Shown here piece after piece: positions 6,583 through 51,900 of a DNA stretch of 64,000 nt. Positions within the stretch are counted from its first letter, which is position 1; each line of letters begins with the position of its first letter. A program made the position numbers and the translations under genes. The stretch is from Tubulanus polymorphus (lineage: Eukaryota; Animalia; Nemertea), in the NCBI RefSeq assembly GCF_964204645.1, contig NC_134031.1, positions 3,162,001-3,226,000 of the forward strand, in the 5' to 3' direction. A model generated the notes under the pieces. The model ran no database searches. It had not been told where the DNA came from and saw only the letters and a program-made list of their open reading frames with translations.

Positions 6583-6651
6583 TTACGCTTGAGCCTCTTC
6601 GTCGGTTTTCAGTTTCATTTCTTCAGCTTCTCCGGCATCGTTTTCATCGGC
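6583..6651 (-). CDS. iGluR-like exon 7, acidic C-tail ADENDAGEAEEMKLKTDEEAQA*
   Basis: catttcattaag acceptor (AAG, less common), phase 0, purine-rich coding-like composition, TAA stop; AATAAA on the minus strand at 6473..6478. Confidence 0.65.
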   Translation of the reverse strand, partial: ADENDAGEAEEMKLKTDEEAQA

Positions 6652-9600
6652 CTTAATGAAATGTAAAGTTGATCAAAAGGTAGAATATGTACAAATTTTA
6701 TCGGCAAAGTAAGGGTTTATTACACTACTAAAAGAGCGTTGTTGTATGGCACAGAATGGTCCTGAAAGTATTCGTTGTTAGATTGGTTATTACAAATGAT
6801 ATTCTGCTCTAAATGCGTTTAGACAGTATAGACCTGACTGTGCAACTCGTCTATGTTTTAAACCCCAAAGCTAAGTTGCACTGTCTTGTTGACTACGCAA
6901 TTCCGTCGTAAGACTGGTCTGGCAACACTAGCCCAGGTTAATTTCGGATTCTTGACTTACTAAACGGAATAAGTCACTGGTCGTACTAGTTCTTACCTTT
7001 CCTTTATTCGAGTTTTTCTTCTTATGAATGCAAATCTCGATTATGAAGGCGATCAACGAGATGATGATACCGATGATGAGTACGAGCAAGGCGCCGCCGA
7101 ACTCGTCCAAACCGACCGACGTGTCGCCGTACATCTTACCACCACTAGCCGGTATATACTGCTCGTCGTTGACGCGGAATCGCTTGCAACTTTCACCGGA
7201 AACGAACCACTTGCGGTTGAGCGCGTGCAGCTTGCCTTCACCTTGCATTCTCAGCAAGGCGATGTCCAGACGACTTCTCAGTTGCGAGTTCTTCGCCACG
7301 GCGAACCCGTAACCTCTGCTGTTCACCGGGCGTCCGACGATAACCAAATCGCATTCGGGATTTCGACGAGTTGTATATTCGATCATTGGTTCTTCGCCGA
7401 TGAAGGCATACGACTCGTTGAGCGCTCGGTTCATGCCTCCGGTTACCGTCTTGGCTACTTGCAGATTCTTGAACATCTTCTTGTAGGTTTCGGTGGTGGA
7501 GTTTCGGAAGAACGAGTACGTCGAGCCTTTATCAACGGTACCGAAGTTGATGCCGGAACTCGCCAGTTCTTCGACGCTGCTCACGCGTGGTTTAGTGTTG
7601 AGGGTCGCGGCGCTTCGCACCATGCCGGAAATGTAGGTGACGAGGAAGACAAGACTGAAAAACCACCAGAAGGCGACCAGAATTCTGACTGAAATTGCTG
7701 CTGGACGGATTGTACTACCTGCCATAGAGAAAATAACATACGTTTATTTCCTTGAAAGTTATATGATTGCGTGAAGGAAAAACAGAAAGATTTAAAGTTA
7801 AACATAAAACGATAGCAAGTAACACATATTTCCTTAAAATGGAAATATACAAAATTACCATAATTACATGACTACATGACAAAGTTTTGCTCTAAAGAAG
7901 TGAAAAACGAGAAGTTGGAAATTTAGCTGGAAATTTGCGTTCATTTGAAGCATTATAAATCTTGTGAGTGTTGGTGTTGCCATGAAAATCTCGGGATGCC
8001 CAATGGAACAAGCCTGTAGTGAGTAAATTAACCAATTATTGAACACGCAACGCTAGAAATGTGGAATTGAAGTCCAAACATAGCTGCAGGCATAGGAACT
8101 CGGGACTTTGCGGGTAATGCATACAAGGTATCATAGATTTAAATGGCTAATGATCGTATATATCTTTTCTAACTTGCACCTTGTAAGAAAAGACTGCTCA
8201 ACATCAGCCACAAGCTTTTATTGATGGCGAATCTATCGTATTTCGTCGCTTCTTGCTTCGTTTCGTACGGGTTGAAATGCATGTACAATGCCAGAATAAC
8301 GCCGACCTGAATTGAGAGGGAAAAATGGGGAACTTTTATTAACATCATTCGAGCGTTCTGAATATTGCTACATCGCGCGCGCGTACAAAGCATTATAGGT
8401 CTTCTATCAACCCGTTAGAAAAATAATGGATTGTAACATGTTTGAAGATGAAGGAAATACCGAACATAAAAACATGAAAGGCATTTAGTCATCTTAGATG
8501 CTTTCACTGGAGATTAGAGATGTATCAGCCGTGTATGATGTGAGCCGTGACATCAATGTAATAATGATATCTCCGCATAAAAATCACGCGCTTAAGAAGC
8601 GATGTCATTTGTCACTTGATGGCGACGGCGTCTTCCCGAACTAGAGATGCACGAGCACCATTGGTAAATCGATAGCAGTTTTATAGACAAGTCTTCGCCT
8701 GAACATAAGTGCTAGTTCAACTATCGTTCGAGGGCTGGTATATTTCTCCTAAGAATTTTGGCAGTACGTTGCAGTGGTTTTACTGGTAAATTTTCCATCG
8801 GACGACCTTCTCAATTGGAACTCAAAATGCGACCTTATTCCCCCCTTCCTCACTCGCTCCCCCTACCTTCCACCCTCCCTCCCTCACTCTCGCCTTTCTT
8901 TGTCCGCAACTTGTTTTTGATATACGTACCACAACAAAGGCGATTATAACGGCAATCCATACACCGTACTTCAACGGCGACAGGAAGAAAGCCATCGTAG
9001 CCTTAGAGCCAGTCTCCGAACCGAAGTTCGTCTTTTTGCTCATGCCGACGACGATTCCTGTTTGCATGTAAGGTGTCGTGAAGTCGATGACTTTTTCGCG
9101 TTCGTGCGTGATTGTCAGCGCTGCAGCGGCAATGTTCGCTTCCTGAAAAATCGAATCAATCTGTGTCTATTAAAACGACGACATCCACTTAGGCCTCTAG
9201 CTTCTATACCCATGTCAATTCCGTATGGCATGGGGATTATGACATTAATGATTCTCCGTTTTGAAAGCCCTAACCCATAAGTCGATTCGGAAAACTGATC
9301 GCAACGCGTCACACTAGAAGGATATGGTCCCCAGGCTCTGCCGAAATTTAGCTCATTCCAAGCACCGTTTTGATCATCCCGCATATAAAAATTGTACCCA
9401 TTACTGCCTATCACTAAATGAAACATGGAATGAGAACTTTAGCCAACAAGGAGATTGTTCTAATGTGCGGATCTCCTCCCCTGGATCTAGTTCTAAAACT
9501 ATTTGTATGTATAGAGGCGATAAAATAAATAGAATTTGGATTTCTTTAGCATTTTTTAGACTCGCGCAGAGGATAGATATCTGTTTCGAACTTACGTCAC

Positions 9601-12600
9601 GAGTAATTTCGCCGACCATTCCGACCCATTGACCGTTTTCTTGAGAGCCGTATTTTCCATCCTTAACCAATATTATCTCGTAAGTTATCGTCATATCCTT
9701 GGCAATAGCGTCCAGTAGGTCTTTGATATAACCGAAGTATCGGTCATTACCTTTGGCGCCTGCATTTGTACTCTCAACCAAGTACGGCTTTTCCTGAAAA
9801 AAAGTTTTAGAATATTTACAGTTTTCCTCAGAACTTCGCACGAATATTTTCTGGTTTAGTTTCTATATTCAATTGGCTTTATTTACATGTATTTTTTATT
9901 TTTTAAGGATTCGAATCTTGGGCGAAACTTTGCAAACTTAAGTGCAACCGAATGTGACATAAGGAATAATGCTAAATTTTTATTTTTGTTTTGAAAGGAA
10001 ATAGATACATTTCAAATTTGTGAATTCTCGCGTCAGGGAATGTGACTAGTTGTTGTAAACCCTTACTTCTCTGGCCTTTGTCCCCATAAGGGGAAAAAGA
10101 AACCTCGAACCAACTGAAAATACCCCCAGTGACTAGGGTTGAATTATCTAGAATAATCGGTTATCCACAACGAGAAAGTTGACGCAGATTAGGGAATGCA
10201 CCGAAATGACAATACCCCGCACCATTTAAAAACTTTTCTTTTCCCAATCTCTTTCGCTAAGAAATGCGCCATATGTTTATCTAAGTGCACGGGAAAAATG
10301 CTTTGTTTAATCTGTCACGCGAATGCGACTGGATTTTATGTATATGCTAGTCGGCTATTCATTTTTTAAGGATCAGTCGACCCAATTTTCGATATAACGA
10401 AGCCCGCATCATCAAATAAAAGAACGCTCCTCGCAAATCGTCGCCGCCGACGCTGAAGAGGTATTCATACGCGCTCGTGTGTAATAACCCCGCATATTAT
10501 ACGTATCATAGCGCCAGACAAATGAGTGCCGTGTGTTCGCTTATTTGCGGCGATTACCAACACGTATTTTATCGCTTTCACGAGAAGGGTGTCGAACGTG
10601 TCTTGAAGTTGGAAAATATTCCAGACATCGATCGTAGATTTTAAGCCAAATTAGATTGTAAAGCTGTGGTCTTGCTTGTTAACATCTTCGAACGATTAGA
10701 TAATAACAAAAATCTATAAGAATTATGTATTCTTGATAATGATAGTAGACCTCCGATAAACTCGTCGGTTATCATAGCACAAGCGACCGTCTAAAATTTG
10801 ATTGAAGAACGAAACCACGAAAGTAACACTCTTAAAGAGGATTTTGACGTTTCAAATGCTATGAGCCATTTTGGGTTTATAGGATTTGAGTAGAAAAGTC
10901 GAAATTATCTTATGGCTTTTCTTTAAATTAGGGGTTCTATTCATCCCCATCGCCTGGGCCTTTCTGGGCTGTGGTGAACTGACATTAATCCCCAGTCGCC
11001 TCCCTCTAGCTTGATCAAGCTCGCCTCGAAAATCCTATTCGGCGCGAATTTCAAGATTGTTCCCTGGGAAATCGTATCAACTTCTTTGATGCGCACAGTT
11101 CAGGGTGATACCGTCCAATCTTTTAAAACAGACTCAGCTTCCCGCAGCGATTGAAATGCGATCACGAATGAAAGGGTTAACCGACGTGCGATGGTTCTAT
11201 CGCTGCCGGTTTTACATTAGCGCTCGTTGAGTAAGATTCATCCTATTTTTACACGCTAACGACCGCGCGATTACACGTCGAAATTAGCATCTATAACGCA
11301 CAGATTTACGGCGTAAATTCGAGCCGAAAATTGTGTTAATAACCATACGTCGAGATATAATACACGATGTGAATTCTGATGTCATAAATAAACGCGGCGA
11401 GAACTGTGCCGTGCGGTGTCACAGTCAAAGAAAAGGCTCTGGATGCAATTAATACTAGATATAATGATAGAGAACTATGTAGGCGCGTGGTAGGTTCGCC
11501 TACTATGTAGGCGCGTGGTAGGTTCACCTACATACTATCAAAATGTGGTGCTTAGTGCCTACCCGCACGACGCAGCGAAACATGTAACACACGGTAACAC
11601 AGAAACACGGAAACAAACACGACTCAATATTGTCCCCAAAACGCTCGGAAACATGACTGTATCCTGATTCCGTGTTTCCATGCGTCATGTGCGCTGGGCT
11701 TAAGCTATGTAGATAGTACAGGACTTTTGAAATCATAATCGTCCGTTCAAATTCTTCATTCCATTTAAGTAATTGATTCGCAAACGCTGTAGATTCGTGT
11801 CACTAAACGCCTTAAATTCAATGTAAATCACGTCTTCAACCTTATCAAGATTGTTCTCTTTTTCTATTTTCTCATTTTGATGACATTGTTGACACTGTCT
11901 GAATTCAGTTGATTATGTTTCCTTTGTGTAAATGTTCCGCCGCTATCTACAAAGCTTTCGAGACCATCCACGGGTAATGGCGGTTCGTTTTTATCGGCCT
12001 ATTCTCACGATTTACTCATATATTTGTTCTGCTTTTATGGATGTTTTACTGCAGCGAGCAATTTCTTCTGTTTATATTGAAATAGTGCACTATCGGTAGT
12101 ACATCGAAAATACTCGAGACACCGAGAAAAAAATCATTCGGAAGAACGTATCGGTACATTTTATGGAAAAACTCTAGGCTTTAAGTGCTTCAGTGAATAC
12201 GACAACTGCTAATGATATACTTACCAAAATAGTGGTTACGACCGCGTGGGGTTTACCATCTATCACAGGAAGACCATACTTCGTCTGGCCTAAAATGGGA
12301 GAATCATTTAGAATATATTAGGATTCTGTGGTGATAGTGCGAGTTTCGATCGTGCAAAGTTTGCCGTAAAATCATTAAACAAATTTTATATCGTTCAATA
12401 TGATATTGGCTAAAGTTTCAAGTTCGAGGTCGATGCTTATACTGCTCGTTATAAATGTTATTTTTGGATTCGCTGTATTTCGCCACCTTTCATTGTTTTT
12501 TTTTCATGTCGTTGTTTATGGTCGGTATCATGATATAGTGACTTTCATCGTCGGCTTTATCTTTAACCACATACACTGGTCGAAGGTTGAGATTGACTAC

Positions 12601-15600
12601 GTGTAAAAACCCATCAACGATATCACATTCTTAAGAGATCTTAGAAATTCTTGTTTAAAGATTATTTTAAGATATGCATAACATGTATGTATTGAAGTTA
12701 ATATCGGATTTCGATAAACTTTATTTGACAGCTAATATACCAAACGACACCGCAAACCCTTTTTAAAACTAAACTGAAAGTGCACATACGACCTAGCGAA
12801 AAATTAGGGTTGATGTCCATGATGCCAGAATACGAACGCATATCCCCGAATTTGTTAGGGGATCGGATATATCAATCAAAGCCCGATGGCCAATGGGCTC
12901 CCAAACACGACTTCATGCTTCCTTCGTATAGTCAATTCGTCAGAAACATTATCTTGTATTGTGTGACAAATGGCAATTTCAGGAAGATCGCCATTGATAT
13001 CTTTACGTAACACCTGTCTCCACAAACGACGATCAACATGTGGAAAATAAATTCATTATGCCTACATAGATATAAAGGCTTGAAACGAAGCCGTCTCCTC
13101 CAAGAGTTAAAAAGGCTAAGACTAAAAACCTTAGACTGAAAACTCATAAATCAGCTTCATGCTTTTCAATAAGTCAGAACTATTTTTGCGAAGTGGCTAT
13201 GCTATCGTGTTTCGGTCATTGCGGTGATGGCGACCAGTTTATTGGCTTCGGTCTGTCATGTCCCATCGCTTGAAAACAACATCATATATTAAGTACCATA
13301 TATCGGAGAAATGTCTGTCAGGTTCACATCGATGTGAATAGTGTTTGTAGCATATCGACAAGTGGTACGCGTCACCCCACGTCGCTGGTGCGGGATTATA
13401 TATCGGAGGGAGTGGGGGTGGTAGCGGTAATGGTGCGGCTCTATGAGTCATTGCTGTCAACCCATGTAACGTGGGAACTGAATAGAAACCAGCACTGCGC
13501 GCGCGCGCAATGTGATTTTGCGATATTGACGAGGAAGTAAAATGAGCAATATGACTGGGTTTCATACCGAGTTACGCAGCTACTGCTAATTTTGCAGGTA
13601 GTTAGGTTGAAAATGCTGATGCGACGATATCGTCGAAATGTTACATTATTTGTGAAACAACGAGGTAGCCCGTCATGTAGGTCTGAACGGCCTTCGTTAT
13701 CGGTTGCGTCGACGTAACGATACGATTTTCCCTTATACCGCTAATAAAAGAACCATTTCAACCCATCCACAAAGTTAGGATCGAAATTGCTCCTCCATCG
13801 TTCATACAGTTTAAAATTGCTTACATAGAGATGTAGTGAAAATAAGCATGATCATGATGATTTGATTACGAAACGTACGCCGAGATGGCAATTTTTGATT
13901 TCAGTATTTTCTCAAGGTCTCTCTATCGTATCACACACGTTAATATGTTTTGATATTTGAAAACAATTCGTTCGCTTTATTTGAAATACTACGAGCACTT
14001 CTCGCTGGGTATTGAACATCTGTATACATTGAATATTGAGCGTGTTTTATATCGATTGACACGCGGACGTTTATTTGAGAGACTCGTGCGCGTTTCTCCA
14101 GACCACGACAGCTGTATATGATATGTGTATGGCGAATCGCGTGTTATTTTGTTTTTGTAAAATGGCTTAATCGAGGCCTTCAAATGATGGCGGCTTGCGG
14201 AAACGAGCCGCGAGTCCAACTAAAGCGAAATCTTCGTACGGTGTAACCAAAATAAATGCAAGCATCCGGCAAAACTGGGGATATTGTCGAATGTCAAAAT
14301 AGCTCGAGGAAACCTTTCGGATCTTTGCTTTTTGTTTCGTAGGTTTTTACCGTATCAGGCATCCAGCATTACCGGATGGCACAAAACAAAATCAGTTAGT
14401 ATCGATGATTGACGACGTGTCCTCGGCGCGAGGTTTTTATTAATCCGCGAGATGATGATCCCTGGCGAGTGAGTCATTCGATGAAAGAGAAACATCGTTG
14501 GCGCATTTTCTCAAGGTCGCGTTATGATGCGCGTCGTTATACGCTGTGTTTACGACCATGCTGCAATCTTGTATCATCGAGCGTCCATGTTCGATGTTAC
14601 TCGACGTTGACACGGAATAAGGTCACACTCGTACCGGTCGATATCTGCGGACACAACTTATTATTCGAGTTCGTCTTTAGATTGGTTATTAGAGAAAGCG
14701 TGGATTACAGTAGAGGAAGTCCTTGGTCCCTGATGCTTGTCCATATTTTGGAATAAGACCCAGGTGCATACAGATTCATACAGTTCTAAGGGCGAACAGC
14801 TTTTGTAAAGTTCCTTTAATTTATACTAAATATTTATCGTTTCTATCCATGCCCGCCTATATGAACCATGGTTAATTGATTTACATATTGTATAAGTATT
14901 TGTGCATCTCTTTTTTCTTTAAGCTGTATATGGAAATCTGTAAATGCATGAACGCGTGTATGTATGAACCTGTTTTTGTGCTCCACGCAAATGTATTTTT
15001 TCTGGAGCAATCAACTAATTGTCACTCCAATGCACATGAATTCCAATTTAGAATTTAGGAGTGAAATAATATCACGATTCAGCGCGTCGCGACGATGAAT
15101 CTGGGAGAGTGCTTCCAATATTCGACAACGAACATAAATAAAGGAATTCTGAAACTCGATGAAAATCGGCTTTTCAAAGTTCTCCCTCAGTATATCGGGG
15201 CGGGTTTGATAGACTGGTAACCGCTTTAAACCGGGGGTTAACTCAATTGAAAATGATTTGAGTTAGCCCCCGAGTTATACATTATTCTATAAAACATTCT
15301 ATAAAACCGGTCCCGATAACATTTCCGAAAAAAAGGAATTCGTTCGATTTGACATTCCACAATATCCCCAGTTTTGCCGGATGCTTGCATTTTGTTACAC
15401 ACCGTACGAAGATTTCGCTTTAGTTGAACTCGCGGCTCGTTTCCGCAAGTCGCCATCATTTGAAGGCATCGATTAAAGCATTTTACAAAAACAAAATAAC
15501 ACGCGATTCGCCATACCGCCGCCAACCTGCCGCTGAGGTTTTCTCGCTGTAAAACAAACTCTCTTTCTAGTCATCGATTAGAAATCTGTTAGGTACCGCG

Positions 15601-16346
15601 AGATTTCGCACCCGACAATCGTCGTATTATTAACATTTGAAAATAAAAACTATGTAGATCAACGACGATGCTTGACGAACTGAAACCCTCGACGCGCGGC
15701 TAGCGTGCTCTTATAAACATCGCAGCTGGCGTCACTGGCTTCTTATCCAGGGTCGGACATCTTGGATAATCGACCGACGAAGATATCGATCCATGAATAA
15801 AATTAGACTTCCATTTTTTTTCTATTCAAAAACGCTCGTACAGGTAGCTTTGAATTTATCGTGTTCTTTAGCTTTACGATTACGTAAATACAGAATACAT
15901 GAATATGACTAGACGAACAATTCATTCTTGTTTACTCCGGTTTGAAATCCGGTTTGCATTGGCTTTTTGAACGTCGAAACGGGTATTACGACATTCGTCT
16001 TTCGTTAAAAAATCCAGCTTAGGTAATAGTCTAGCAATGCGTTTTCTCGAGAATTTTCAACGACGCCTTTTGTTAACGAAATGAAATTTGAATCATAGGC
16101 AAGCTCGGAGGGTGGTACAGGATACCGCCGAATCATCGGTTCTTCCTTCTCCGGATGCATAGAAATGGTGAAATATCAGAATACATTTTGTAGGGCCTGC
16201 AACTCCAACACCGGACCAAAAAAGAAATGAACAACGCCCCCCGTATTTTCAAGTTATTTCCCAGTTTTCGTTTTGCACTTACCTACTGCAAGTCCGATAA
16301 GCGACAATGCAACGACCAAAACGACTGAATACGCCTTTCTAACCAT
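6583..16346 (-). CDS. Ionotropic glutamate receptor-family protein (AMPA/kainate-like LBD) lacking the amino-terminal domain; 7 coding exons complement(join(6583..6651,6997..7718,8180..8306,8930..9142,9596..9793,12225..12289,16283..16346)), 1458 nt, 485 aa
   Basis: All six introns are GT..AG and the phases join without a stop (64+65+198+213+127+722+69 nt). Signal peptide MVRKAYSVVLVVALSLIGLAVG; S1 VVTTIL-EKPYL...GYIKDLL...DGKYG...WVGMVGE...ALTITHEREKVIDFTTPYM; M1 FLSPLKYGVWIAVIIAF; M2 SLWLMLSSLFLQG; M3 RILVAFWWFFSLVFLVTY; S2 FGTVDKGSTYSFF...YAFIGEEPMIEY...CDL...GYGFA...KWF...C; M4 FGGALLVLIIGIIISLIAFIIE. Confidence 0.9.
6997..7718 (-). CDS. iGluR-like exon 6 (M3, S2, M4)
   Basis: Core of ORF 6928..7725; tctctatggcag acceptor, AAG|GTAAGA donor; WWFF, GST, GYG, S2 cysteines and M4 helix. 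Confidence 0.95.
8180..8306 (-). CDS. iGluR-like exon 5 (end of M1, M2 pore loop)
   Basis: ctctcaattcag acceptor; VGVILALYMHFNPYE...NKSLWLMLSSLFLQG. The AAG|GTGCAA donor is weak but gives a gap-free alignment to QQGCDISPR. Confidence 0.88.
8930..9142 (-). CDS. iGluR-like exon 4 (S1 with ligand-binding Arg, pre-M1, start of M1)
   Basis: ttttcag acceptor, GTG|GTACGT donor; EANIAAAALTITHEREKVIDFTTPYMQTG...FLSPLKYGVWIAVIIAFVV. Confidence 0.92.
9596..9793 (-). CDS. iGluR-like exon 3 (S1: EKPYL...DGKYG...WVGMVGEITRD)
   Basis: ttttcag acceptor, GAC|GTAAGT donor, 66 codons with classic S1 motifs; lies within ORF 9401..9841. Confidence 0.93.
11474..11531. repeat. 28-bp tandem duplication (actatgtaggcgcgtggtaggttcRcct x2)
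   Basis: Two adjacent units differing at one base. Confidence 0.9.
11561..11700. mobile_element. PIF/Harbinger-like MITE, family D, degenerate copy in iGluR intron 2
   Basis: Shares gcacgacgcag, aacgctcggaaac and tgcgtcRtgtgcg with 18410..18565 and 26947..27011; ends gggct|taa. Confidence 0.6.
12225..12289 (-). CDS. iGluR-like exon 2 (GQTKYGLPVIDGKPHAVVTTIL)
   Basis: cccattttag acceptor and TTG|GTAAGT donor; ends with VVTTIL, the first S1 strand of AMPA/kainate receptors. Confidence 0.88.
14127..15516. repeat. Inverted repeat with ~170-bp arms (14127..14298 and 15348..15516) and ~1.05-kb spacer, in iGluR intron 1
   Basis: gtatggcgaatcgcgtgttattttgtttttgtaaaatg...gcaagcatccggcaaaactggggatattgt matches the reverse complement of the second arm with few mismatches. 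No TSD seen. Confidence 0.9.
15197..15314. mobile_element. Short palindromic MITE (GGGCCCGGTTTCATAGAC-type termini)
   Basis: Imperfect TIRs and internal cgggggtt/gcccccg inverted motifs; homologous to 22146..22255. Confidence 0.6.
16283..16346 (-). CDS. iGluR-like exon 1, signal peptide (MVRKAYSVVLVVALSLIGLAV-G)
   Basis: ATG in gagATGG context, basic N-region plus hydrophobic core, ends at TAG|GTAAGT in phase 1, matching the phase of exon 2. Confidence 0.8.
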
Positions 16347-33581: not shown

Positions 33582-34667
33582 TCAGCCGTTTTTAATAAGC
33601 GACACTTCTGTCATTTCGCCGCCGTAATTGCTACTACTACTATTGCTATTCAACACTCGACGACGCTGGCGACTCCTACCATAGCATAGATCTTTCAGCT
33701 GACTGCGGAATTTCTTCCCTACTAGGCAGTACAAGAAAAAGTTAACGCAATTGTTGATGGCCGACAAGTCGTACAATATGGGCAGCCACGTGATCAGTAA
33801 TCCTTTCTTCTTGTAGAACATCGTGACAATATGGAATAGAATAGACGGTCCTTCGAGGACGAAGAAGGCGAGGGCGACTAGAACGGCCCTCTTGGTCACT
33901 ATAGTTTCGATGTCCTGTTGCGAGTTTGTATTGCCGCAAGTGCGCATACCCGCCGAGCGCCGCACCGCGCGTACTATCATATAGTTCATGATGATTATCG
34001 ACAGCATCGGCACTAGAAAATAGACCAGGAAATAGCCCGTTATCACGTACAAATTCAGATAGATCGGGTGGAAGAAAGTCGTCGACAAGTTCGATTTCGG
34101 GCGGAGCCTATTCGTGCATTTGTCGAAAACGTACTTGACCTCGTAGGTCCACAGTTTCGGCAGACTGAACACGATGCTGAATATGAGAATAAGCACGGTG
34201 GCGATAGCGGCGTTCTTCCTCGTGCACCACGAGCGCGCGTGCAACGGCCGACAGCACGCTAACCACCTGTCGGTCGTCATCAAAATCACTAGATAAATCG
34301 AGAACACTTTGGACGTGGCGAACGAGAACCAAATCGCGTTCGAGGCGAGCATCGAGAATTCGAAGTAGCTCCCCAGTCGTCCGGTGAATTGAAATATTTC
34401 CGGCAACGCGTATTTCACTAAGTTCATCAACAACACGAAACTATCGGTGATCGATATGATACGCAGGATGAAGACGGGACTCGTCTTTTTCGTGCGGCCT
34501 TCTTTACCGAGTATGACGAACGCCAGGGCGTTAGTGATCAGTCCGGCAAAAACGATGACGACGAGCACGGGCACGTGTAAGACGAAATGAGCCATGTGCA
34601 CGTGAATATCCTTCATTTTACTATCGTAAATACACTCCGTGTCGTTATTTTGCGTCGAGTTATTCAT
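33582..34667 (-). CDS. Rhodopsin-class (class A) 7TM GPCR, FMRFamide-receptor-like/Srw-like orphan, single-exon CDS, 361 aa
   Basis: N-terminal sequons NNS/NST/NDT; TM1 GLITN; TM2 ISITD; TM3 DRW followed by ACCRPL; TM4 FSLP; TM5 FLVP..N; TM6 FFVLEGP; TM7 NNCVNFFLYC; helix 8 KKFR. Confidence 0.93.
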   Translation of the reverse strand: MNNSTQNNDTECIYDSKMKDIHVHMAHFVLHVPVLVVIVFAGLITNALAFVILGKEGRTKKTSPVFILRIISITDSFVLLMNLVKYALPEIFQFTGRLGSYFEFSMLASNAIWFSFATSKVFSIYLVILMTTDRWLACCRPLHARSWCTRKNAAIATVLILIFSIVFSLPKLWTYEVKYVFDKCTNRLRPKSNLSTTFFHPIYLNLYVITGYFLVYFLVPMLSIIIMNYMIVRAVRRSAGMRTCGNTNSQQDIETIVTKRAVLVALAFFVLEGPSILFHIVTMFYKKKGLLITWLPILYDLSAINNCVNFFLYCLVGKKFRSQLKDLCYGRSRQRRRVLNSNSSSSNYGGEMTEVSLIKNG

Positions 34668-37600
34668 GGTCTGTTCGTTCAGCGCTACGTCGTCGGAATA
34701 TGAAAGCTCCAGCTCCTATAGCGCGTGTATGCGTTTAAGTCGTACGTTACCGACACAAAATAACGGCGATATATCTCAATACGTATATAACATGATACTG
34801 GGTCATCATTCTTGTAATTGGTATATTGTTCAACAGTAAATCAGGCTAATCGCGACGATGGATCGTTTTTTCGTTTTTTGTTTTGTATTTTTCGAATTTG
34901 CGAACAAATTATTCCATATTGAAGCGCGTATAACTTTTTGTTGCATTGATCTTGTTATTTCATTGTCCGCCGTATTTCCAGCCGCGCCAAATGAGGCTTA
35001 TTTCCGATGCCTGAAAAGATAAAGCGAAGCTCGAAAGATTAATAAATATATCGACAATGTTCCTGCGGCACTGACCAGAAGTTTTTACAGTAGTCTATGC
35101 CTTATTGGTAACTGGTCAAACCAGCAAACCGCTCTAACCGGCAAATTTTGATTAGATTTACATGTAAATATCCCCTCCCTGATTCTCATTTGGTCTCCGG
35201 CCAAACCCAAGATGGAATCTACTGCAGTTTACCTTTCAGAAAACCTTCAAATGATATTCCTCAAAAATAGCAAGTAAGAACTGATAAAATTTGTGATCAT
35301 ATTGGTGATGGTGACGATTCGGACCAAATCAAAAGAAAACATGACTCGATCTCCACCAATTGTTTTCTAAATACCGGTACTACGAAGCACCGCGTTTAAA
35401 CCCAGTTCTTCTTTTTCAGGTGACAATTTCGTGTCAAGTTAAAAAAAGAATTGGTTGATAACGCGTGTATTATTGCATCTTTTCTTTGAATCAACCATTA
35501 TATCAGACCGGGAAACAAAATCGATGTAAAATCCTAGCTAAACAACGGCAACTTTTTAAACAGACGGTTATATTCTCAAACAGACGCCAATAATATAATC
35601 GTTACATTCTGGGTTTGTCCGCACAAAACTCGTCCATTATTTCCATGTTTTGAACTGAGATACGGATATTTCACATCGAAAACAGTTATGAAGAAGTTTA
35701 TAGATATTCCTTTGTTATTATCGGTAAAGTCCTATGCCGGTTCAGACTGGTTGGAATATTGTTTGAATGAGCTGGAACCGAAATTTTCAATTATGCACTT
35801 CGATTTAAAAAAAAAATTCTGAAAAACATTCGACCGCCAATCAAACAACTATCGATGTATTTCGATTTCCGATTTCAGAATTAAACCCCCGTTTCGCTCT
35901 CGACAGGTGGGGAGGGTTTGTAAGGACACCAAATCATAAGAATCAAACGTTATTTCACCGATCGATGATTAACAGGGTCAATACCTATTTTAAGATGAAA
36001 AAAACGGGGTATCGGGGCCGAATTCCGCCGGAAATTGCCGAGTGTCGACGGAGAGTACCGAATGCAACGTAAACGCGCATTACCGCATTACGTAATTAGC
36101 CTTGCCGGTTGGTGGCAGCGTTCCCGGAATCTTGTGAGTGATCGCCTGAAATACTCCAACATGAAATCAAAAACAGCTGACTGCCGAACATACAAAATTC
36201 TCTCTCTGGTAAAAGTATGGACTCTTAAAGACGAATTGCGTTAGTGCCCCGAGCCCAGAAGCTCAAACAAACTATGACGGCGCACGTGCGCGATCTTCGT
36301 TCTTTTTCACAGGACGCATATCCCGTACGGAGGACAGTCTTCATATTAGATTGGTTGCCGGCGACCAGTCTATTTTCATATGAACATGTACGTCTCCCTG
36401 TGCGCGTGGTGGTTCGAACCCCGGTAAAAAACCACACTAATTAATCAATCCGGGCATTAATCGCGCTAGTGCTTTCCTGGTTTTATCGCAACGTTCAGAC
36501 ATAACTAACGCTAAAACTAAAACGGCTAAAACACCGATACGAGATTGGCAACAACTACCACTGACTACCGTTAAAGCTGTGTCACATCTTGATCGTAACC
36601 AAATTATTGAATGTATTATCCGATATGTATCTAGTGTCACAGCTGACACTTCACTGATTCGATCTAGTCTAGTCTTGATTGACCCATCTCGGCCTCAGCG
36701 AACCGAAACAAGATTGATAGTCACCAAGCTTGCATGTTCTCTTGGTTATTTGGTTTCCGCAACCTTCGAAGTTAAGTGAGTTTTATACGTAGTTTCTGAA
36801 ACCAGCATCTTTTCAAATTCTCTCTGAAATCGGGCGTTTTTTTAGAATCCTTGTAGGCATCGGTTCCAAGCAAATATGCATAACGTGTTCGAAATTCGAG
36901 CGACGTAACTCCCCGATGAGCTCTCTCCAATGCCAAGAAAATATGTTTGCTTCTCAGATTGCGTTGACAAACAATGACGAAAAATCAATCGGAACTATTT
37001 TTTGTTCGAACTTTCTGTTGACGTCTCATCTTTTCCCTCACAACCAACATAGACTTTTTGTAGAAGTACTCACGAGACCGATCGGTCCCTGAGAGCAATA
37101 ATAATCATTCTCGTGTTTATCCGCATTAACGATTCCCCTCGTTCATCCTTTCAGAACTAGGCCAAGCATGCATAAATTTACCCAACTAATGAAAACTAGA
37201 GGGAAATGGCTTCAACAACTTACCCGGCATCAAAACCGCTTTCAAATTTTCGATGTGTGTAATGTGAATCTATATCCAGAATATTTGTTAATTGTCTGTG
37301 AATTAATGTGAACAGCATCAATTATTGTAACTTCTGTAATCTTTGTTTTCGTTTTTGTGCTCTGAACAAATCTACTTTCGTCGAGCTTCAAAACATTTTC
37401 ATATTCATCCCGTACGATGATAATGCTTTTTCTCGCGATAACCATTGCGATCATCAAATATTACACTCGAGAAATGTTTGAACAAATTTGTAGTAAACAA
37501 ACGAATGTTAAACGTAAGCCTTTCCGATGTAAGTAGGTCTTGTGTAGAGAGTTCAAATAGTTGAAAATCCATAGTAGCAACAACAGTTCAAATCGCATTT

Positions 37601-38267
37601 TCTAATGAGTATATAAATCTATTCTAGCAGGTATTCAAAACAAAAGCTAATTACAAACATTATCGATTACTAATTACTACTTATTATTTAACATAGATAC
37701 CAGTATGATATGAAAGTTTAATCACTTGCGCTATGCCTGAAGAGGGGAAAATGTAACTCCCGAAAATGTTTGCTAGAATGAGTTTATATACTTATTAGAA
37801 AATTAGATTTGTACTGTTTAGTTGTTGCTTCTATGGATTTTTCAACATCAGTTGGACATTCAGGTCAACGCATTTGTCGGCTCAGATATTCCATAATGAG
37901 TCGGGGTTCATTCGGTTACATTACACGGTCTTAATTAGAACTTAAAATCGTAATTAGATATCGGTACGAATACCGAGTTGGGGTCAGGTTTAGCAGACAG
38001 CGCGCACCGTAGAAGTTGGCAGGTGTAATTAAAGGTGATAACTCTCCCGCAGCATACGTATATACATAGTCCACACAGCGGGTTACTTTCACAGTTCCTC
38101 TGACCAGTGCAAACAGTTTGAGAAGGCCCGTCAGTTGCGCAAGAAGTCTTCGCTGTCACCTAACAGTTTTGAACATTCAATGCACATCTGCATGATAGGA
38201 TTAAGAAGTTGAGGAAAAGTGCTTGATTCAAGGAGTGAAATACTGATCGGAAAGTTGAAGTGTAAAC

Positions 38268-39353
38268 ATGGTTATCACCGAAAATGCCGTTTTCAGCGTT
38301 GCTAGATATTACATGGCTTACGTCAATCCGTTTATCATATTCTCGGGAGTTGTCGGAAACGTGTTGACGCTCGTCGTCCTACCGACAATTCGTAACAAAG
38401 TGCACAGCGCGACGGTAACGTATTTACTCTGTCTGGCGGTCAGCGACTTGCTCGTTCTATTTTCGTCGAGTATTCCGGAGTGGTACGGAATTCACTTACC
38501 GGCCGTCATCGATCACGACAGCGACTCGTCGTCGACTTTTCCCAGGTTGAACATCCTCACAATCAGCGACGCGGCATGCAAGAACCTTTTCTACATCTAC
38601 GACGCTTCCTCGACGATTTCCGCGTGGATTCTGGTCATATTTGCCGTGGAACGATGCATAGCCATTTGGTTTCCGCTCAACGTTTCTACCCTGGTCACCA
38701 AACGGCGTAGGTACGTGGCGGTATTTTTTGTCATCTGTCTTGCGTGTCTCACTCGCTTCCCGTCGTTTCTCTACGCCGCTGTTCATTCGCCTGTCGGCAT
38801 TAACGTAACGATATGTTCGATCAAACCTTCCAATCTGGCACCGGGCATGTTTCAGTTGTATTCCATTCTCCAGTACATGCTGCATACGACAATTCCGTGG
38901 GCGGCTATTTGTACTAACTCGGCCCTAGTCCTGGCTCGGATACGCTCGCCTTACGGGCACCTCAGATCGGCTTCCGCTGTAAACATCAAACGCGATCGTA
39001 AATGCTTGCTGAATCTGATGGCCGTCAACGGCGCGTTTATCATCTTACTCGGCCCGCAGACTATCATCGGAACCTTGTACACGTGCTCGCGAAGTCAGAG
39101 TAGCGATTTGAGTTTCATACCGGCCGGGTTCACGTCTCATTTGACGCATCTGTTCGAATTGAGCGTCCTGGCGAAGAACATCGCCGCGGTGAATCATTCG
39201 ATAAACAACGTAATTTACACGTACAACATCAAACAGTATCGCGAAGGTTTGAAGCGAATTTTCTGCTGTCGACGAAACGACGATTCATCGGCGAGATACC
39301 TGAATCGGCGTAGCGCTATCAGTGCACGTCGGTCATCGGAAACGGATTTATAG
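38268..39353 (+). CDS. Rhodopsin-class (class A) 7TM GPCR, peptide-receptor-like orphan, single-exon CDS, 361 aa
   Basis: TM1 GVVGN; TM2 LAVSD; Cys3.25 in DAACK; TM3 ERC followed by IAIWFPL; ECL2 Cys in VTICS; TM5 TIPW..N; TM6 FIILLGP; TM7 NHSINNVIY; helix 8 QYREGL. Confidence 0.92.
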   Translation: MVITENAVFSVARYYMAYVNPFIIFSGVVGNVLTLVVLPTIRNKVHSATVTYLLCLAVSDLLVLFSSSIPEWYGIHLPAVIDHDSDSSSTFPRLNILTISDAACKNLFYIYDASSTISAWILVIFAVERCIAIWFPLNVSTLVTKRRRYVAVFFVICLACLTRFPSFLYAAVHSPVGINVTICSIKPSNLAPGMFQLYSILQYMLHTTIPWAAICTNSALVLARIRSPYGHLRSASAVNIKRDRKCLLNLMAVNGAFIILLGPQTIIGTLYTCSRSQSSDLSFIPAGFTSHLTHLFELSVLAKNIAAVNHSINNVIYTYNIKQYREGLKRIFCCRRNDDSSARYLNRRSAISARRSSETDL

Positions 39354-47035: not shown

Positions 47036-48697
47036 ACCATATAATCATATACGTCGTGTTTGTACTAAAACTGCACAATCTGCGTCTGGAATTAATTCAT
47101 TAAGTTTGAGTCGTCGAAAAAAATCCTCGGACGGCTCGGCGATAAATCCATTAATGAAATTGCCTTTGCATAAACTGACCATTTGTCAAAATAATTGCTT
47201 CATGTGAAAAGACGAAGGAAAGGACTGTACTAAGATAGAGCGTCTCGCAATACATCAATTTAATCTCAATAGTGTATTGATATTGAAAGCGTCTCACGAC
47301 ACCGTTGAAGATATTCGGCGTAAAGAAAGAAGGAATTTAACAATAAGCTCCAATGATTTATGCGTTATCGAATTATGGTAAACATCGGGGCTCGTTTCAA
47401 ATTCCTCATCGTTTTAAGATCCATTCTTTACTAGGTTTTCAAACGGGTTAAAGGTATCCATGAATAATCTACATTTTTGTCTTTTTTCAACCAGCGGGTT
47501 TACACAATTGAGTAGTTGTTAGTCAATTATCGATCTATCAAACCAGCCCATGAGGTTAACTCATGATTTTTAAGCTTGAATAGGTCTCTAAAACCGGCTC
47601 CCGAAAACGTCTGCCACGGAACCGCTCGAGGCCGTGCTCTATACACGACCCGGGATTAGATTTCATTAAAGTTCATTTCGTGTCGGTAGATTTTAATCAA
47701 ATAGTCGTCTGCAGGCGATATTGACTTTCCGTGCGCAGTCTGATGTAATCACGGTTTTCTGCAGATGATTTACACAGCGGGACGCGCTTGATCAACACCG
47801 CGAATCTGCCGAAAAACCGACCATTATTTCGATCGGTTCGAAAAATCGCCACAATTAAACCAACAAAAAGTAACCGAACCCCATTAACAATGTGAGACTA
47901 GAATAAACAATAGAATAGATGAACGATGGAGAAGTTGAACCAGGGATGGGAGAGAGAATCTTCTGAGAGGTGTAAATAAGAGTAGCCTTTATCTGTTAGA
48001 TCGCCAGAAGTGCTTAACAGGAGACGGATATCATTTCCTGTAAATTCGCCCTGTTGCGTACATACGCGCGCTCGTAAAACTTTATTACAGAATAAGACCG
48101 AATTATCTAAAACCTTTTTAACTGTCGAACTCCACAGGAAAAACTCGCATGAACTTAGAACCATATATAAGAAACGGTTTGGAATTCTTTAAGATATCTT
48201 ACTGTAATTGTCATCTTTGCTGACATAACGCCTAAGTTCTGGATCTGATACGGACGTGTTTGCTTAGATTTTATTGGCTGGCTGACTTGTAGGCTGGGGT
48301 GGCGCCACCGGCTGGAGCTATACCACCCGCTGGCAGAATAATGTCATTCTCTGTCGCAGCAAAGATGCTGATGGACATACGCACATCTTTCGTTTTCGAG
48401 CAAAAAATCTGAATCTGGATCTGAATCTGGTCATAGACCTTTGCACTGATTTCGGTATTTTTCCCCAAAGACTCGACCGGCGCTTCAGATTACTTAATCA
48501 GTCTCACCTGGGCGGTTTCATATTTCCGTTTCGGCTCCACTGAAATCATTTTTGAATCGTCGCATCGCGCGATTCAGATTTCCACCGATAATGTGAATGT
48601 AGATAATCCGTAAGGCAACTACTTTCGATGTACATTCCGTCTCAAGAACTAAGATGTCTATTGATAATGGGTAATGTGATCGCACGTGTGGCTTGTT

Positions 48698-48945
<248 letters not shown>

Positions 48946-51900
48946 GACCCGGAAACCCAGTGGCACAGTCAATGTTTTTTAAGACCATCATAGTTCTATT
49001 ACCAATCTGACTTACCAGTAAACACATCTGGACTTCAAACATGAATGCGCAAGCTCTGTGATCATGAGAAACATTGCCGCCAAATTAAGGCATATAAAGT
49101 TCGTTTCGTTTAAGAAAAGTATACTTGCTTATTGAAATTTGATGCACCTTTTGGTGTTGAAGCATGCAGGGCGCACTGCTAGGTCTAAATCATATACTTT
49201 TGGCTAAAGTCATGTTCGTAACTCCACATCTAATAACGTCAGGTTTGAATAGATGAAATAAACTACGAATTAATTCAATTTAATGAATCCAAATTCCTTT
49301 TCTATAACTTTTCTATGATGACGGGCACCTGTTCGAGTTTCTTAGAGCTTCCCCGATCAATCGACCGGATCAAGTTAAACCAGATATTGCTGTCGACTGC
49401 TTCAGAAGAATCAGATCTGTCGCACGTATCGCTCAACGCAACGGAAAGAAATCGAGTAAGAAATTGAAAAAAAAACTGAACAAAACAACTAGAAAATCAG
49501 GCGCCGCTTCGTCTAATACTTTGAATGAACTAATTTGCATACTTGAATCGTGCACGTTGAGTAACGATAACGAATCGTTTTAAGATTATTGACATTCGAC
49601 GCAAATCCCAGGGATTATTTCGTGTATCCATTCTGCGCTGCTGTTATGGTTCCGAACGGTTTTCTAAGACGTGCTCATATCCGGCTCGCTAAGACGTCCG
49701 CGATAAATCATTGCTGTCGTCGGACAATTATCAATCGGAACAACGTTTTTCGAAACCTTTTACCAGAATTATCGGATTCCGCGTGTGTCGCTAAGGTTTA
49801 AATTATGGGGGTTAATGTATCGGTCAACCAGGACAGCCGTGCCGGCGTCATACATCCGTGCCATAATACATACACGTATAATCACTTCCTATATCGGTGA
49901 CGAGATTGATCGAATATCATTTAGAACGAAGAAGGGGTTAGTTCAGCCCTCGCTTCGGCGAAGTGGACAGTCGCATGAAGTACGGACTGTCACGTCCTTG
50001 TTTGGCAATCCGTCGACGTCATAACGAGCGAAATTAACCGCCAAAGCATGCACGGACTAAGACGACGATTATACATCTTCCAAATTGGAAGTTTGAGGAA
50101 TTAAAGCTACGTATCTCGATGTAAAGGCCCGGCCTCGCAACCCTCTGATATCCGTACATACATTACAGTAGGCCTCGCATCGCTTCAGCTAAAATTTTCT
50201 TGAAGTCTTAAGATTACAAGGATTTTCATGTATATCTTCGTGTTGACTTGCTCTTTTTTCTTTTCCAACTGTATGCGTCACTTGCCATTAGTTACATGTA
50301 CTTATTTACAAGATGAATAGAAAAGTACCAAAATAGAATTCATCGAGAACTTCTTCATTCATCTACCGTCGACACGAATTATAGCGTCTAATTCCACTTA
50401 ATGTACGCATGAACCTTTTAGTTTTTTTTTGTCACTTAACATTTTCTTGTATAACTTTCAAGGAAATGAATACAACGCGAGTCAGGTACGTAGCAGCCTC
50501 GTGTTCTGCACCGATCTGGAGAAAGAGATTGAAAATATCAGACTGATTTCAAACTGGATTGCGTTGTTGTTTTTGCTCGCCGACGTGACGGAAGGGATGC
50601 ATGTTACACCGCGACAATTCGTTTGTCAGGCGGATGTGATTTTCCAAACGACAGGAAGTTCCATCGCGTAATGTAAACTCCAATCATCGAATTCCGCGTC
50701 AAGCCAACGAAATAAAAGAAAGAAAAGGAGAGGAAAATGATACGTTGGTTTCCAGAATAATGTTTAACATTTGCGCTTCAGAACTTCCGAAAGAAACGTT
50801 CCTCTTATTTCAATTATATAAAGAATCAAATCTACTTGTGACTTAGGTCCGGTAGCATGACCGAGCTCAAATGGTCAAATATGACCCGACAACTTCTGGA
50901 ACTTGAGATGCGCCGATGGGGTGTTTTAAGTTCGAAAGACCGATCTCATTACTTACGGGGCTAAATTTCTCGGCTAAATATAATCACTTCATGTGACACC
51001 GAACGAATGACGCAAGTGGAAATACGAAGCCGATGAAACTTTATTGCGAAACAATCACATAAATGTCAAGGTAAAGGCCTCACTAACTGTACCTAGTTAG
51101 TTCATCAGGCTCGTATAACGTTAATCTCCGTTACTGTTGTTAGAAATAAGAAGCTTTATACAACGGATTAGCGGGGATTACATTTACAACGTAATAGCAG
51201 CTTTTCTTAGAATGTAATTTGTGTTGATGGCATCTTAACGTATTTTTACTACGGCCTTTGACAGGGCGACACAGACATATTGTCATTTCTTCGTCCCGTT
51301 ACGTAGTATCAAGCCTATACTTATCCCATACTTGGGATGTCAGGAATTATACGTACTTCGACTAATGTACGCTCAAGTTCCCAGCCTCAGCCCTCTACTG
51401 TGGCTAAATCGAAATTCGAAATATTCTAAGGTGAAGGTCACGTATAGCTATCGCCTGCGAATGAAATCGATTTAGCGTCGACGAATTTGTTGTTCTTGTT
51501 TACTCGGAGCATTTAATATCGCGTTTTTCGTCGGGTCGCGAGACTTCACGAGAGCAAACGAGGTCGCGTCGCATTAATCAGCGGGACGCGTCAACGCCCA
51601 TTAATTAGCACACCCGCCATAGACGAACAAACTGCCGACTGTAAGAAATTTATCAGCCTTCGATAATTCGAATCGAAAAAAATTATATCTCTCAGATTCA
51701 TTTGCGGTTGCGTTGACGCAGTTTAGCATTTATAACGAAAGGCAGTTTTGAATATTCGATTTTTTGCCGACGAATCTCAACCGAAAAGAAGTATCGATGA
51801 AGCCAAATTATAGGGGTTTACTCGTAGCTGTAATTTCATCTACTGAAGTTATCGTCGCAGAAAGAGCTAGTTACCCGATCTCTAATTACGGGATATTTTT

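Follow-up and report, generated by a model that had tools for sequence, protein, structure and literature searches.

A gene on the minus strand of a 64,000-nucleotide stretch of the Tubulanus polymorphus genome (contig NC_134031.1, positions 3,162,001 to 3,226,000; hereafter the window) encodes an ionotropic glutamate receptor (iGluR) in which the gate motif SYTANLAAF is replaced by TYISGMVRS, with an arginine at the Lurcher position, and the question it raises is what a receptor with such a pore does. SYTANLAAF is treated as the gating signature of iGluRs; here an expressed receptor with a glutamate-type pocket has a thoroughly rewritten gate, and relatives in another nemertean order and in an annelid likewise have arginine or lysine at the Lurcher site. 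These proteins are natural material for learning which parts of the motif gating needs and which partner subunits can take over, a question also raised by structures of ionotropic receptors (IRs). They fall into a blind spot as well: at least one large phylogeny excluded such sequences by rule, which leaves the short, degenerate-gate iGluRs of lophotrochozoans and hemichordates unclassified. The gain is moderate; degenerate gates were already known in short iGluR-like subunits, namely tuning IRs, the Lambda and Phi groups and kainate-binding proteins. The nemertean clade, the wider set of short invertebrate receptors and the retention of a basic residue at the Lurcher site are undescribed in the literature searched.

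An expressed receptor without SYTANLAAF

Exon-by-exon translation gave a protein of 485 amino acids over seven exons (486 codons including the stop), in which the Pfam domains Lig_chan and Lig_chan-Glu_bd were found across four adjacent minus-strand frames. A search of 1.8 billion representative proteins retrieved P0001, named by NCBI 'glutamate receptor ionotropic, kainate 2-like [Tubulanus polymorphus]', whose residues 1-485 are identical to the exon translations. Four public runs of the species contain the stretch, including X1, which covers it evenly, as DNA would, and X3, a second sample that was taken as RNA from its splice joints. The parts of the gene, with the ligand-binding domain (LBD) formed by S1 and S2 and the membrane segments numbered M1 to M4, are as follows.

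6583..16346, minus strand: whole coding span, seven exons, equal to P0001
16283..16346, minus strand: exon 1, start codon and signal peptide (residues 1-22, last codon split); the end of the X3 contig past 12292 reads signal-peptide codons
12225..12289, minus strand: exon 2, first mature residues, leading straight into S1 (exon translation, spliced contig)
9596..9793, minus strand: exon 3, first part of S1 in the LBD (Pfam Lig_chan-Glu_bd, E 4e-18; splice joint 9792/12224)
8930..9142, minus strand: exon 4, end of S1 (ALTITHERE, in which Thr119 and Arg124 are the alpha-carboxylate contacts), pre-M1 and start of M1 (Pfam, GluK2 alignment)
8180..8306, minus strand: exon 5, remaining M1 and the M2 pore loop (Pfam Lig_chan, GluK2 alignment)
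6997..7718, minus strand: exon 6, end of the pore loop, M3, S2 and M4 (Pfam Lig_chan, E 3e-11; splice acceptor 7720-7719)
6583..6651, minus strand: exon 7, acidic C-terminal tail and stop codon TAA at 6585-6583, with the 3' untranslated region running on below 6500 (exon translation, contig)

X3 yielded a single spliced contig of 1826 nt, at a word depth of 1307, which skips 6651-6995, 7717-8177, 8305-8927, 9142-9594 and 9793-12223, all five of them GT..AG on the minus strand, and continues past the last joint into the signal-peptide exon with no exon mismatches against the window. X1 yielded one contig spanning 6500-9386. A genome search found no second, intron-less copy of the gene and only spliced RNA yields a contig like that of X3, so the gene is spliced and expressed. 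In the transcript the signal-peptide exon is followed by exon 2 and this by S1, with no exons for an amino-terminal domain; the domain of ~400 amino acids that precedes S1 in canonical AMPA, kainate and delta receptors is thus missing from this 485-residue protein.

Among the four runs, exons held one variant in ~1.5 kb and introns 19 in ~4.4 kb (Poisson P ~0.013), in a census that is crude and drawn from uneven contig coverage. The sole exonic variant, at 9122, is GCA/GCT, a synonymous change in an alanine codon seen in the DNA-type run X1. This census stood in for the ratio of nonsynonymous to synonymous substitution rates, since the nearest relatives are 29-38% identical and synonymous sites are therefore saturated, and as a crude sign it fits purifying selection on the gene.

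The gate lies in exon 6, at the following positions, with A8 numbered as by Wilding and Huettner (PMC6445585).

7612..7638, minus strand: variant gate motif TYISGMVRS, residues 250-258, in place of SYTANLAAF (GluK2 alignment)
7615..7617, minus strand: Arg257 (CGA), motif position 8, which is the Lurcher position A8 (GluK2 alignment)

The sequence-only reading had translated M3 and paired TYISGMVRS with SYTANLAAF without gaps. Its translation was recovered in the minus-strand frame 7743..6931, and the pairing held in a HMMER alignment with GluK2 (5kuf, E 8e-75) that is gap-free from the pore loop through M3, with tyrosine as the only identical residue and all eight substitutions as it had listed them. 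This protein and GluK2 are also alike in the spacing of 35 residues that leads from the WW pair to the conserved acidic-acidic-Leu of S2, which supports the ungapped reading. That reading had also asked for the bases of 7600-7718, the first 119 of exon 6, to be confirmed in reads and cDNA; X1 and the spliced contig of X3 both cover them with no differing letters. Neither an assembly error nor a silent gene, two ways in which it had said it could fail, was found, as the two runs agree on the bases and the X3 contig is spliced.

The departure from SYTANLAAF exceeds what chance would give. In the alignment of 121 relatives, 96 canonical rows have at positions 2-9 Y in 96, T in 92, A in 95, N in 93, L in 92, A in 84, A in 89 and F in 84, and arginine or lysine at position 8 in none. 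A recent study found the Lurcher alanine fully conserved even in divergent placozoan receptors. Identity to SYTANLAAF is 1/9 in this protein, which places it outside the iGluR gate motif as usually defined and below the inclusion rule of at least 4/9 residues applied by Ramos-Vicente et al. 2018; because iGluRs with fewer than four SYTANLAAF residues were discarded there, proteins like this one were never placed.

Positions 4-5 of the rewritten motif are Ser-Gly, at the place where B/D subunits kink in open-state structures of AMPA receptors. Positions 3, 7 and 11, which face the pore in GluA2, are Ile252, Val256 and Ala260 and stay hydrophobic or small across the nemertean clade described below. 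No clade-specific acidic partner for Arg257 was found in pre-M1 or at the top of M4; an Asp-Glu stands before M4 in this protein and is not common to the other proteins with a basic residue at position 8.

Outside the gate, the iGluR architecture is complete, with an S1S2 LBD split by M1-M2-M3 and followed by M4, and the GluK2 alignment extends over residues 36-465. The positions that matter for the ligand and for the pore loop are these.

7519..7527, minus strand: Gly287-Ser288-Thr289, the GluA2-type 'GST' contacts of S2 for the distal carboxylate of the ligand (GluK2 alignment)
7393..7395, minus strand: Glu331, matching GluK2 E738 and GluA2 E705, the alpha-amino contact (GluK2 alignment)
8184-8186, minus strand: Leu221 at the Q/R site, followed by Gln222 (GluK2 alignment)
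7711-7713, minus strand: Thr225 at the +4 acidic (polyamine/calcium) site (GluK2 alignment)

Glutamate-contact residues are kept throughout, namely the Tyr of FGYIKDL, Thr119, Arg124, Gly-Ser-Thr 287-289 and Glu331, and the cysteine pair of S2 is present; Arg124 is invariant in 121 aligned sequences. With all ligand-holding residues of AMPA and kainate receptors in place, the pocket looks glutamate-like. The claim that open reading frame, splice sites and LBD are intact therefore stands, the frame being open over seven exons, the joints exact in the X3 contig and the pocket residues kept. GluK2 and GluA2 provide the best sequence and fold matches, sharing the pocket residues, the cysteine pair and the topology, whereas this protein differs from them in lacking an amino-terminal domain, in eight of nine gate residues, in Arg at A8, in Leu for Gln/Arg at the Q/R site and in Thr for Asp/Glu at +4.

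An AlphaFold2 model built from 121 sequences (pLDDT 90.2) has a signal helix at 2-20 and then the first LBD strand at 34-41, with nothing between. As a monomer it draws M3 as one helix, 231-260, ending at motif position 11. Foldseek matched the model to LBD and transmembrane structures of AMPA and kainate receptors (AMPA receptor E 1e-34), and B/D chains of AMPA receptors fitted it better (TMq 0.60-0.66) than A/C chains (0.48-0.52). M3 extends to ~+17 in the A/C chains of closed receptors and to ~+12 in their B/D chains (PMC6445585), and the modelled M3 length and chain fit agree weakly with a B/D-like subunit.

A family of short receptors with degenerate gates

The sequence-only reading had taken the altered motif as a peculiarity of a single gene, a view that has to be given up. 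The closest paralogs in the same genome are 31-36% identical in exon 6 and all lack SYTANLAAF, having instead gates such as TYVGAMVKT, TYIVAMIKT, TYVILLFRG, SYILILILV, TYISNFAGQ and TYVASLSSI. The exact string YTANLAAF is encoded at 19 places in the genome, against none in a reversed control.

In quick trees, one of them of 124 relatives, 25 rows split from all canonical AMPA-, kainate- and delta-like rows with support of 95-96 in the SH-like approximate likelihood ratio test (SH-aLRT). Most of these 25 are 420-520 amino acids long and nearly all have degenerate gates, and they come from the nemerteans Tubulanus and Lineus, the annelid Owenia, hemichordates, a tick and molluscs (chiton, Haliotis and freshwater mussel), together with frog and fish proteins named "probable glutamate receptor". 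All 25, including the rows resembling vertebrate kainate-binding proteins, carry a hydrophobic residue and then Gln at the pore-loop tip. By this comparison, the rewritten gate is a trait of the whole family of short receptors.

A more careful tree of 47 rows, from which the motif columns were omitted, grouped six nemertean proteins, five from Tubulanus and one from Lineus, with ultrafast bootstrap (UFBoot) 99 and SH-aLRT 96. This protein fell outside the branch holding 22 canonical anchors, a branch supported by SH-aLRT 96 in the quick and 83/87 in the careful tree. All trees were built without an outgroup and without named IR, Phi, Epsilon or NMDA anchors.

Counted without gaps from the WW pair, arginine or lysine stands at position 8 in 8/25 short rows and in none of the canonical ones. 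The eight are Tubulanus P0001, P0004 and P0036, Lineus P0074, a Lineus trio encoded in tandem (gates FYIGGILRS, FYVSGIMRS and FYVGGIMKS) and one Owenia protein; a further Tubulanus locus, L008, also has Arg there. Four of the six proteins of the nemertean clade are basic at this position, the Lineus one included, so the state occurs in both main nemertean lines. It requires at least five changes on the careful tree, which implies either repeated gains or an old origin with repeated losses.

Across the seven nemertean proteins that are basic at position 8, conservation of the motif falls within the top 14-16% of all windows of nine residues, and few segments are better conserved than the end of the pore loop and the first half of M3. 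Judged by this alignment, the rewritten gate is constrained in these proteins and not drifting, and their pore seems to matter. The earlier suggestion that the motif does not reflect general decay gains from this, as the motif is better conserved among nemertean relatives than the average segment, while the gene itself is spliced and expressed, its only exonic variant is synonymous and its glutamate contacts are intact.

When public proteins were searched with residues 226-300 alone, no ortholog sharing the motif turned up. Whole-protein and clade-alignment searches returned mainly canonical iGluRs and added only named anchors.

Among known groups, the Phi class and the Lambda subfamily are reported to have lower conservation of SYTANLAAF, and Gln is absent from the Q/R site of every Phi subunit (Ramos-Vicente et al. 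2018). The reduced motif and the non-Gln Q/R residue both hold in this protein, which was compared with Phi by class description only. It differs in its host, as Phi is reported only from deuterostomes (Ramos-Vicente et al. 2018).

Several further loci were recorded in passing. At least seven more encode short iGluRs with degenerate gates, at C7 (569 kb, 4.24 Mb and 6.53 Mb), C6 (3.2 Mb), C1 (8.9 Mb) and C10 (0.78 and 1.32 Mb); the gate at the C6 locus is TYVILLFRG, with Arg at position 8. The named loci of the nemertean clade, P0004, P0036, P0079 and P0094, lie on the same 21.6-Mb chromosome as the gene described here. In Lineus longissimus, two short iGluRs that lie in tandem and have separate signal peptides are fused in the gene model P0002 (989 aa); with P0007 on the same 16.3-Mb contig they make up the tandem trio, all of whose members have Arg or Lys at motif position 8.

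What the receptor may do with its pore

The sequence-only reading had offered a leak channel, a non-conducting or metabotropic receptor and an obligate heteromer subunit without choosing among them. The last of these is the best supported, by analogy, and the leak channel is disfavoured, while a receptor that does not conduct keeps some probability. We favour, tentatively and at a little less than an even chance, an amino-acid-binding subunit of a heteromeric channel that needs canonical partners.

Such a short subunit would consist of a signal peptide, an S1S2 clamshell, an M1-M2-M3 pore and M4, without an amino-terminal domain. Its intact amino-acid pocket, probably for glutamate, would close on the ligand and pull a flexible M3, with Ser-Gly at the usual hinge and a helix end near +11 in the monomer model, and the ordinary gate and selectivity filter would come from partners that keep the SYTANLAAF hinge of canonical receptors and have Gln at the Q/R site. 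With two copies in each tetramer, Arg257 would be an adaptation within an upper gate that has been rebuilt, rather than a lesion of the Lurcher type. What we infer in this scheme is that the subunit assembles into heteromers, which ligand it binds and what Arg257 does; candidate partner subunits exist in the genome, given its 19 YTANLAAF loci.

The scheme follows what has been seen in insect IRs by cryo-electron microscopy. IRs are obligate heteromers, and in IR8a/IR75b the motif of the tuning subunit IR75b is largely degenerated whereas the co-receptor IR8a keeps TFTANLAAF; IR75b occupies the distal positions, at which a degenerate M3 is proposed to need only flexibility while the co-receptor hinge opens (bioRxiv 10.64898/2026.09.30.755715). 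The likeness to tuning IRs extends to derivation from iGluRs, absence of a full amino-terminal domain, a degenerate gate motif and, as in IR75b, retention of the ligand-backbone arginine and an acidic residue (bioRxiv 10.64898/2026.09.30.755715), and both animals are protostomes. Charge at the Lurcher site has a precedent in GluK2, where treatment of A8C with (2-aminoethyl)methanethiosulfonate (MTSEA) places a lysine-sized positive charge at A8 with little effect on holding or kainate current (PMC6445585). Because this charge neither opens nor kills the channel, Arg at A8 need not mean a leak.

Several points weigh on the other side. The partner subunits are known here as candidate genes alone, and the case for a heteromer is one of analogy, to insect IRs and to the kainate-binding proteins of vertebrates. 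This protein departs from typical tuning IRs in its fully glutamate-like pocket, which keeps all side-chain contacts for glutamate, GST included, so the lost contact that serves as a criterion for tuning IRs is not seen. It is likened to them by features, in trees built without IR anchors, and its nearest non-nemertean rows include deuterostomes, a group in which Croset et al. found no IRs. The preference for B/D chains may be a general habit of AlphaFold2 monomer models, and Leu at the Q/R site with Thr at +4 could equally well belong to a pore that conducts poorly or not at all.

A homomeric cation channel gated by glutamate or another amino acid, with a gate built differently, is possible though unlikely. 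Ile252, Val256 and Ala260, on the turn of M3 that faces the pore, would then make up a hydrophobic gate of reduced length, and Arg257 would sit at the membrane-water boundary or the mouth of the pore, tuning conductance or gating. This would suit a protein with a full and conserved set of LBD, pore loop, M3 and M4, in which motif positions 3, 7 and 11 keep their hydrophobic or small character in the clade and for which the charge at A8 has its tolerated counterpart in GluK2 (PMC6445585). In a homomer, however, cations would have to pass four Arg side chains near the axis as well as four Leu at the Q/R site, which would be unusual, and A8C side chains of different subunits come near enough to bind one Cd ion (PMC6445585). 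The known functional precedents, moreover, tuning IRs and vertebrate kainate-binding proteins alike, are not known to give current as homomers.

Less probable again is a non-conducting surface binder of the kainate-binding-protein type, which would signal or act as a scaffold without ion flux. Vertebrate kainate-binding proteins, described in the literature of the 1990s as lacking homomeric channel function, have degenerate gates, and the marks of the group (~40-55 kDa, no amino-terminal domain, AMPA/kainate-like pocket) are all present in this protein. The frog and fish proteins of this kind, or 'glutamate receptor U1', share with it a length of ~440-520 amino acids, the missing amino-terminal domain, the intact AMPA/kainate-like pocket, a degenerate gate (AYIGSFASY, CYFANLISW) and the hydrophobic residue followed by Gln at the loop tip, and NCBI calls several molluscan relatives 'U1-like'. 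They differ in having no basic residue at position 8. The vertebrate rows stand on the same side of the split as the nemertean clade in the quick trees, but the careful tree, which has no outgroup, joins them to it without support (54/34 and 29/0). The conservation of the pore-loop end and the start of M3, among the best-conserved parts of the nemertean proteins, also argues against a binder, as it suggests a pore in use.

It is improbable, though worth stating, that the nemertean clade is a distinct iGluR class in which the basic Lurcher residue, the Gly-containing hinge and the hydrophobic Q/R residue together make a new gate or filter. Such a class may, for example, comprise glutamate-gated channels with altered, even anion-leaning selectivity, or channels biased to the open state and restrained by a partner or ligand. 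Major phylogenies of iGluRs would then have missed it by filtering away sequences whose SYTANLAAF is degenerate.

A constitutively open leak channel, with a bulky charged residue in place of the Lurcher alanine, is very improbable. Replacing A8 in subunits of the delta, AMPA, kainate and NMDA types does slow deactivation and cause some constitutive opening (PMC6445585), but the holding current of MTSEA-modified GluK2 A8C, with its lysine-like charge, is little changed (PMC6445585), and where the whole motif is remodelled the logic of a single site does not transfer. An abundant open cation leak would also be costly at the transcript depth seen in X3, and Arg or Lys at position 8 recurs in relatives. 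That the gene is a duplicate in decay or neutral drift, or a mistake of the assembly, is scarcely credible: it is a singleton, public proteins include no close ortholog of it and its next relative is ~31-38% identical, but its frame is open over seven exons and exactly spliced in a high-depth transcript contig, its bases agree between the DNA run X1 and the RNA-derived X3, nonsynonymous variants are absent and its pocket residues are conserved.

Other features of the window

Two intron-less frames of the rhodopsin family of G-protein-coupled receptors lie ~17-22 kb upstream of the start codon of the receptor, at higher window coordinates. The first, at 33585-34715 on the minus strand (377 aa), matches Pfam 7tm_1 at E 5e-18 and also the nematode Srw chemoreceptor model; the second, at 38259-39350 on the plus strand (364 aa), matches 7tm_1 at E 1e-18. 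A long microsatellite of dinucleotide type occupies ~48645-48990 and translates as YIYIYI... in several frames.

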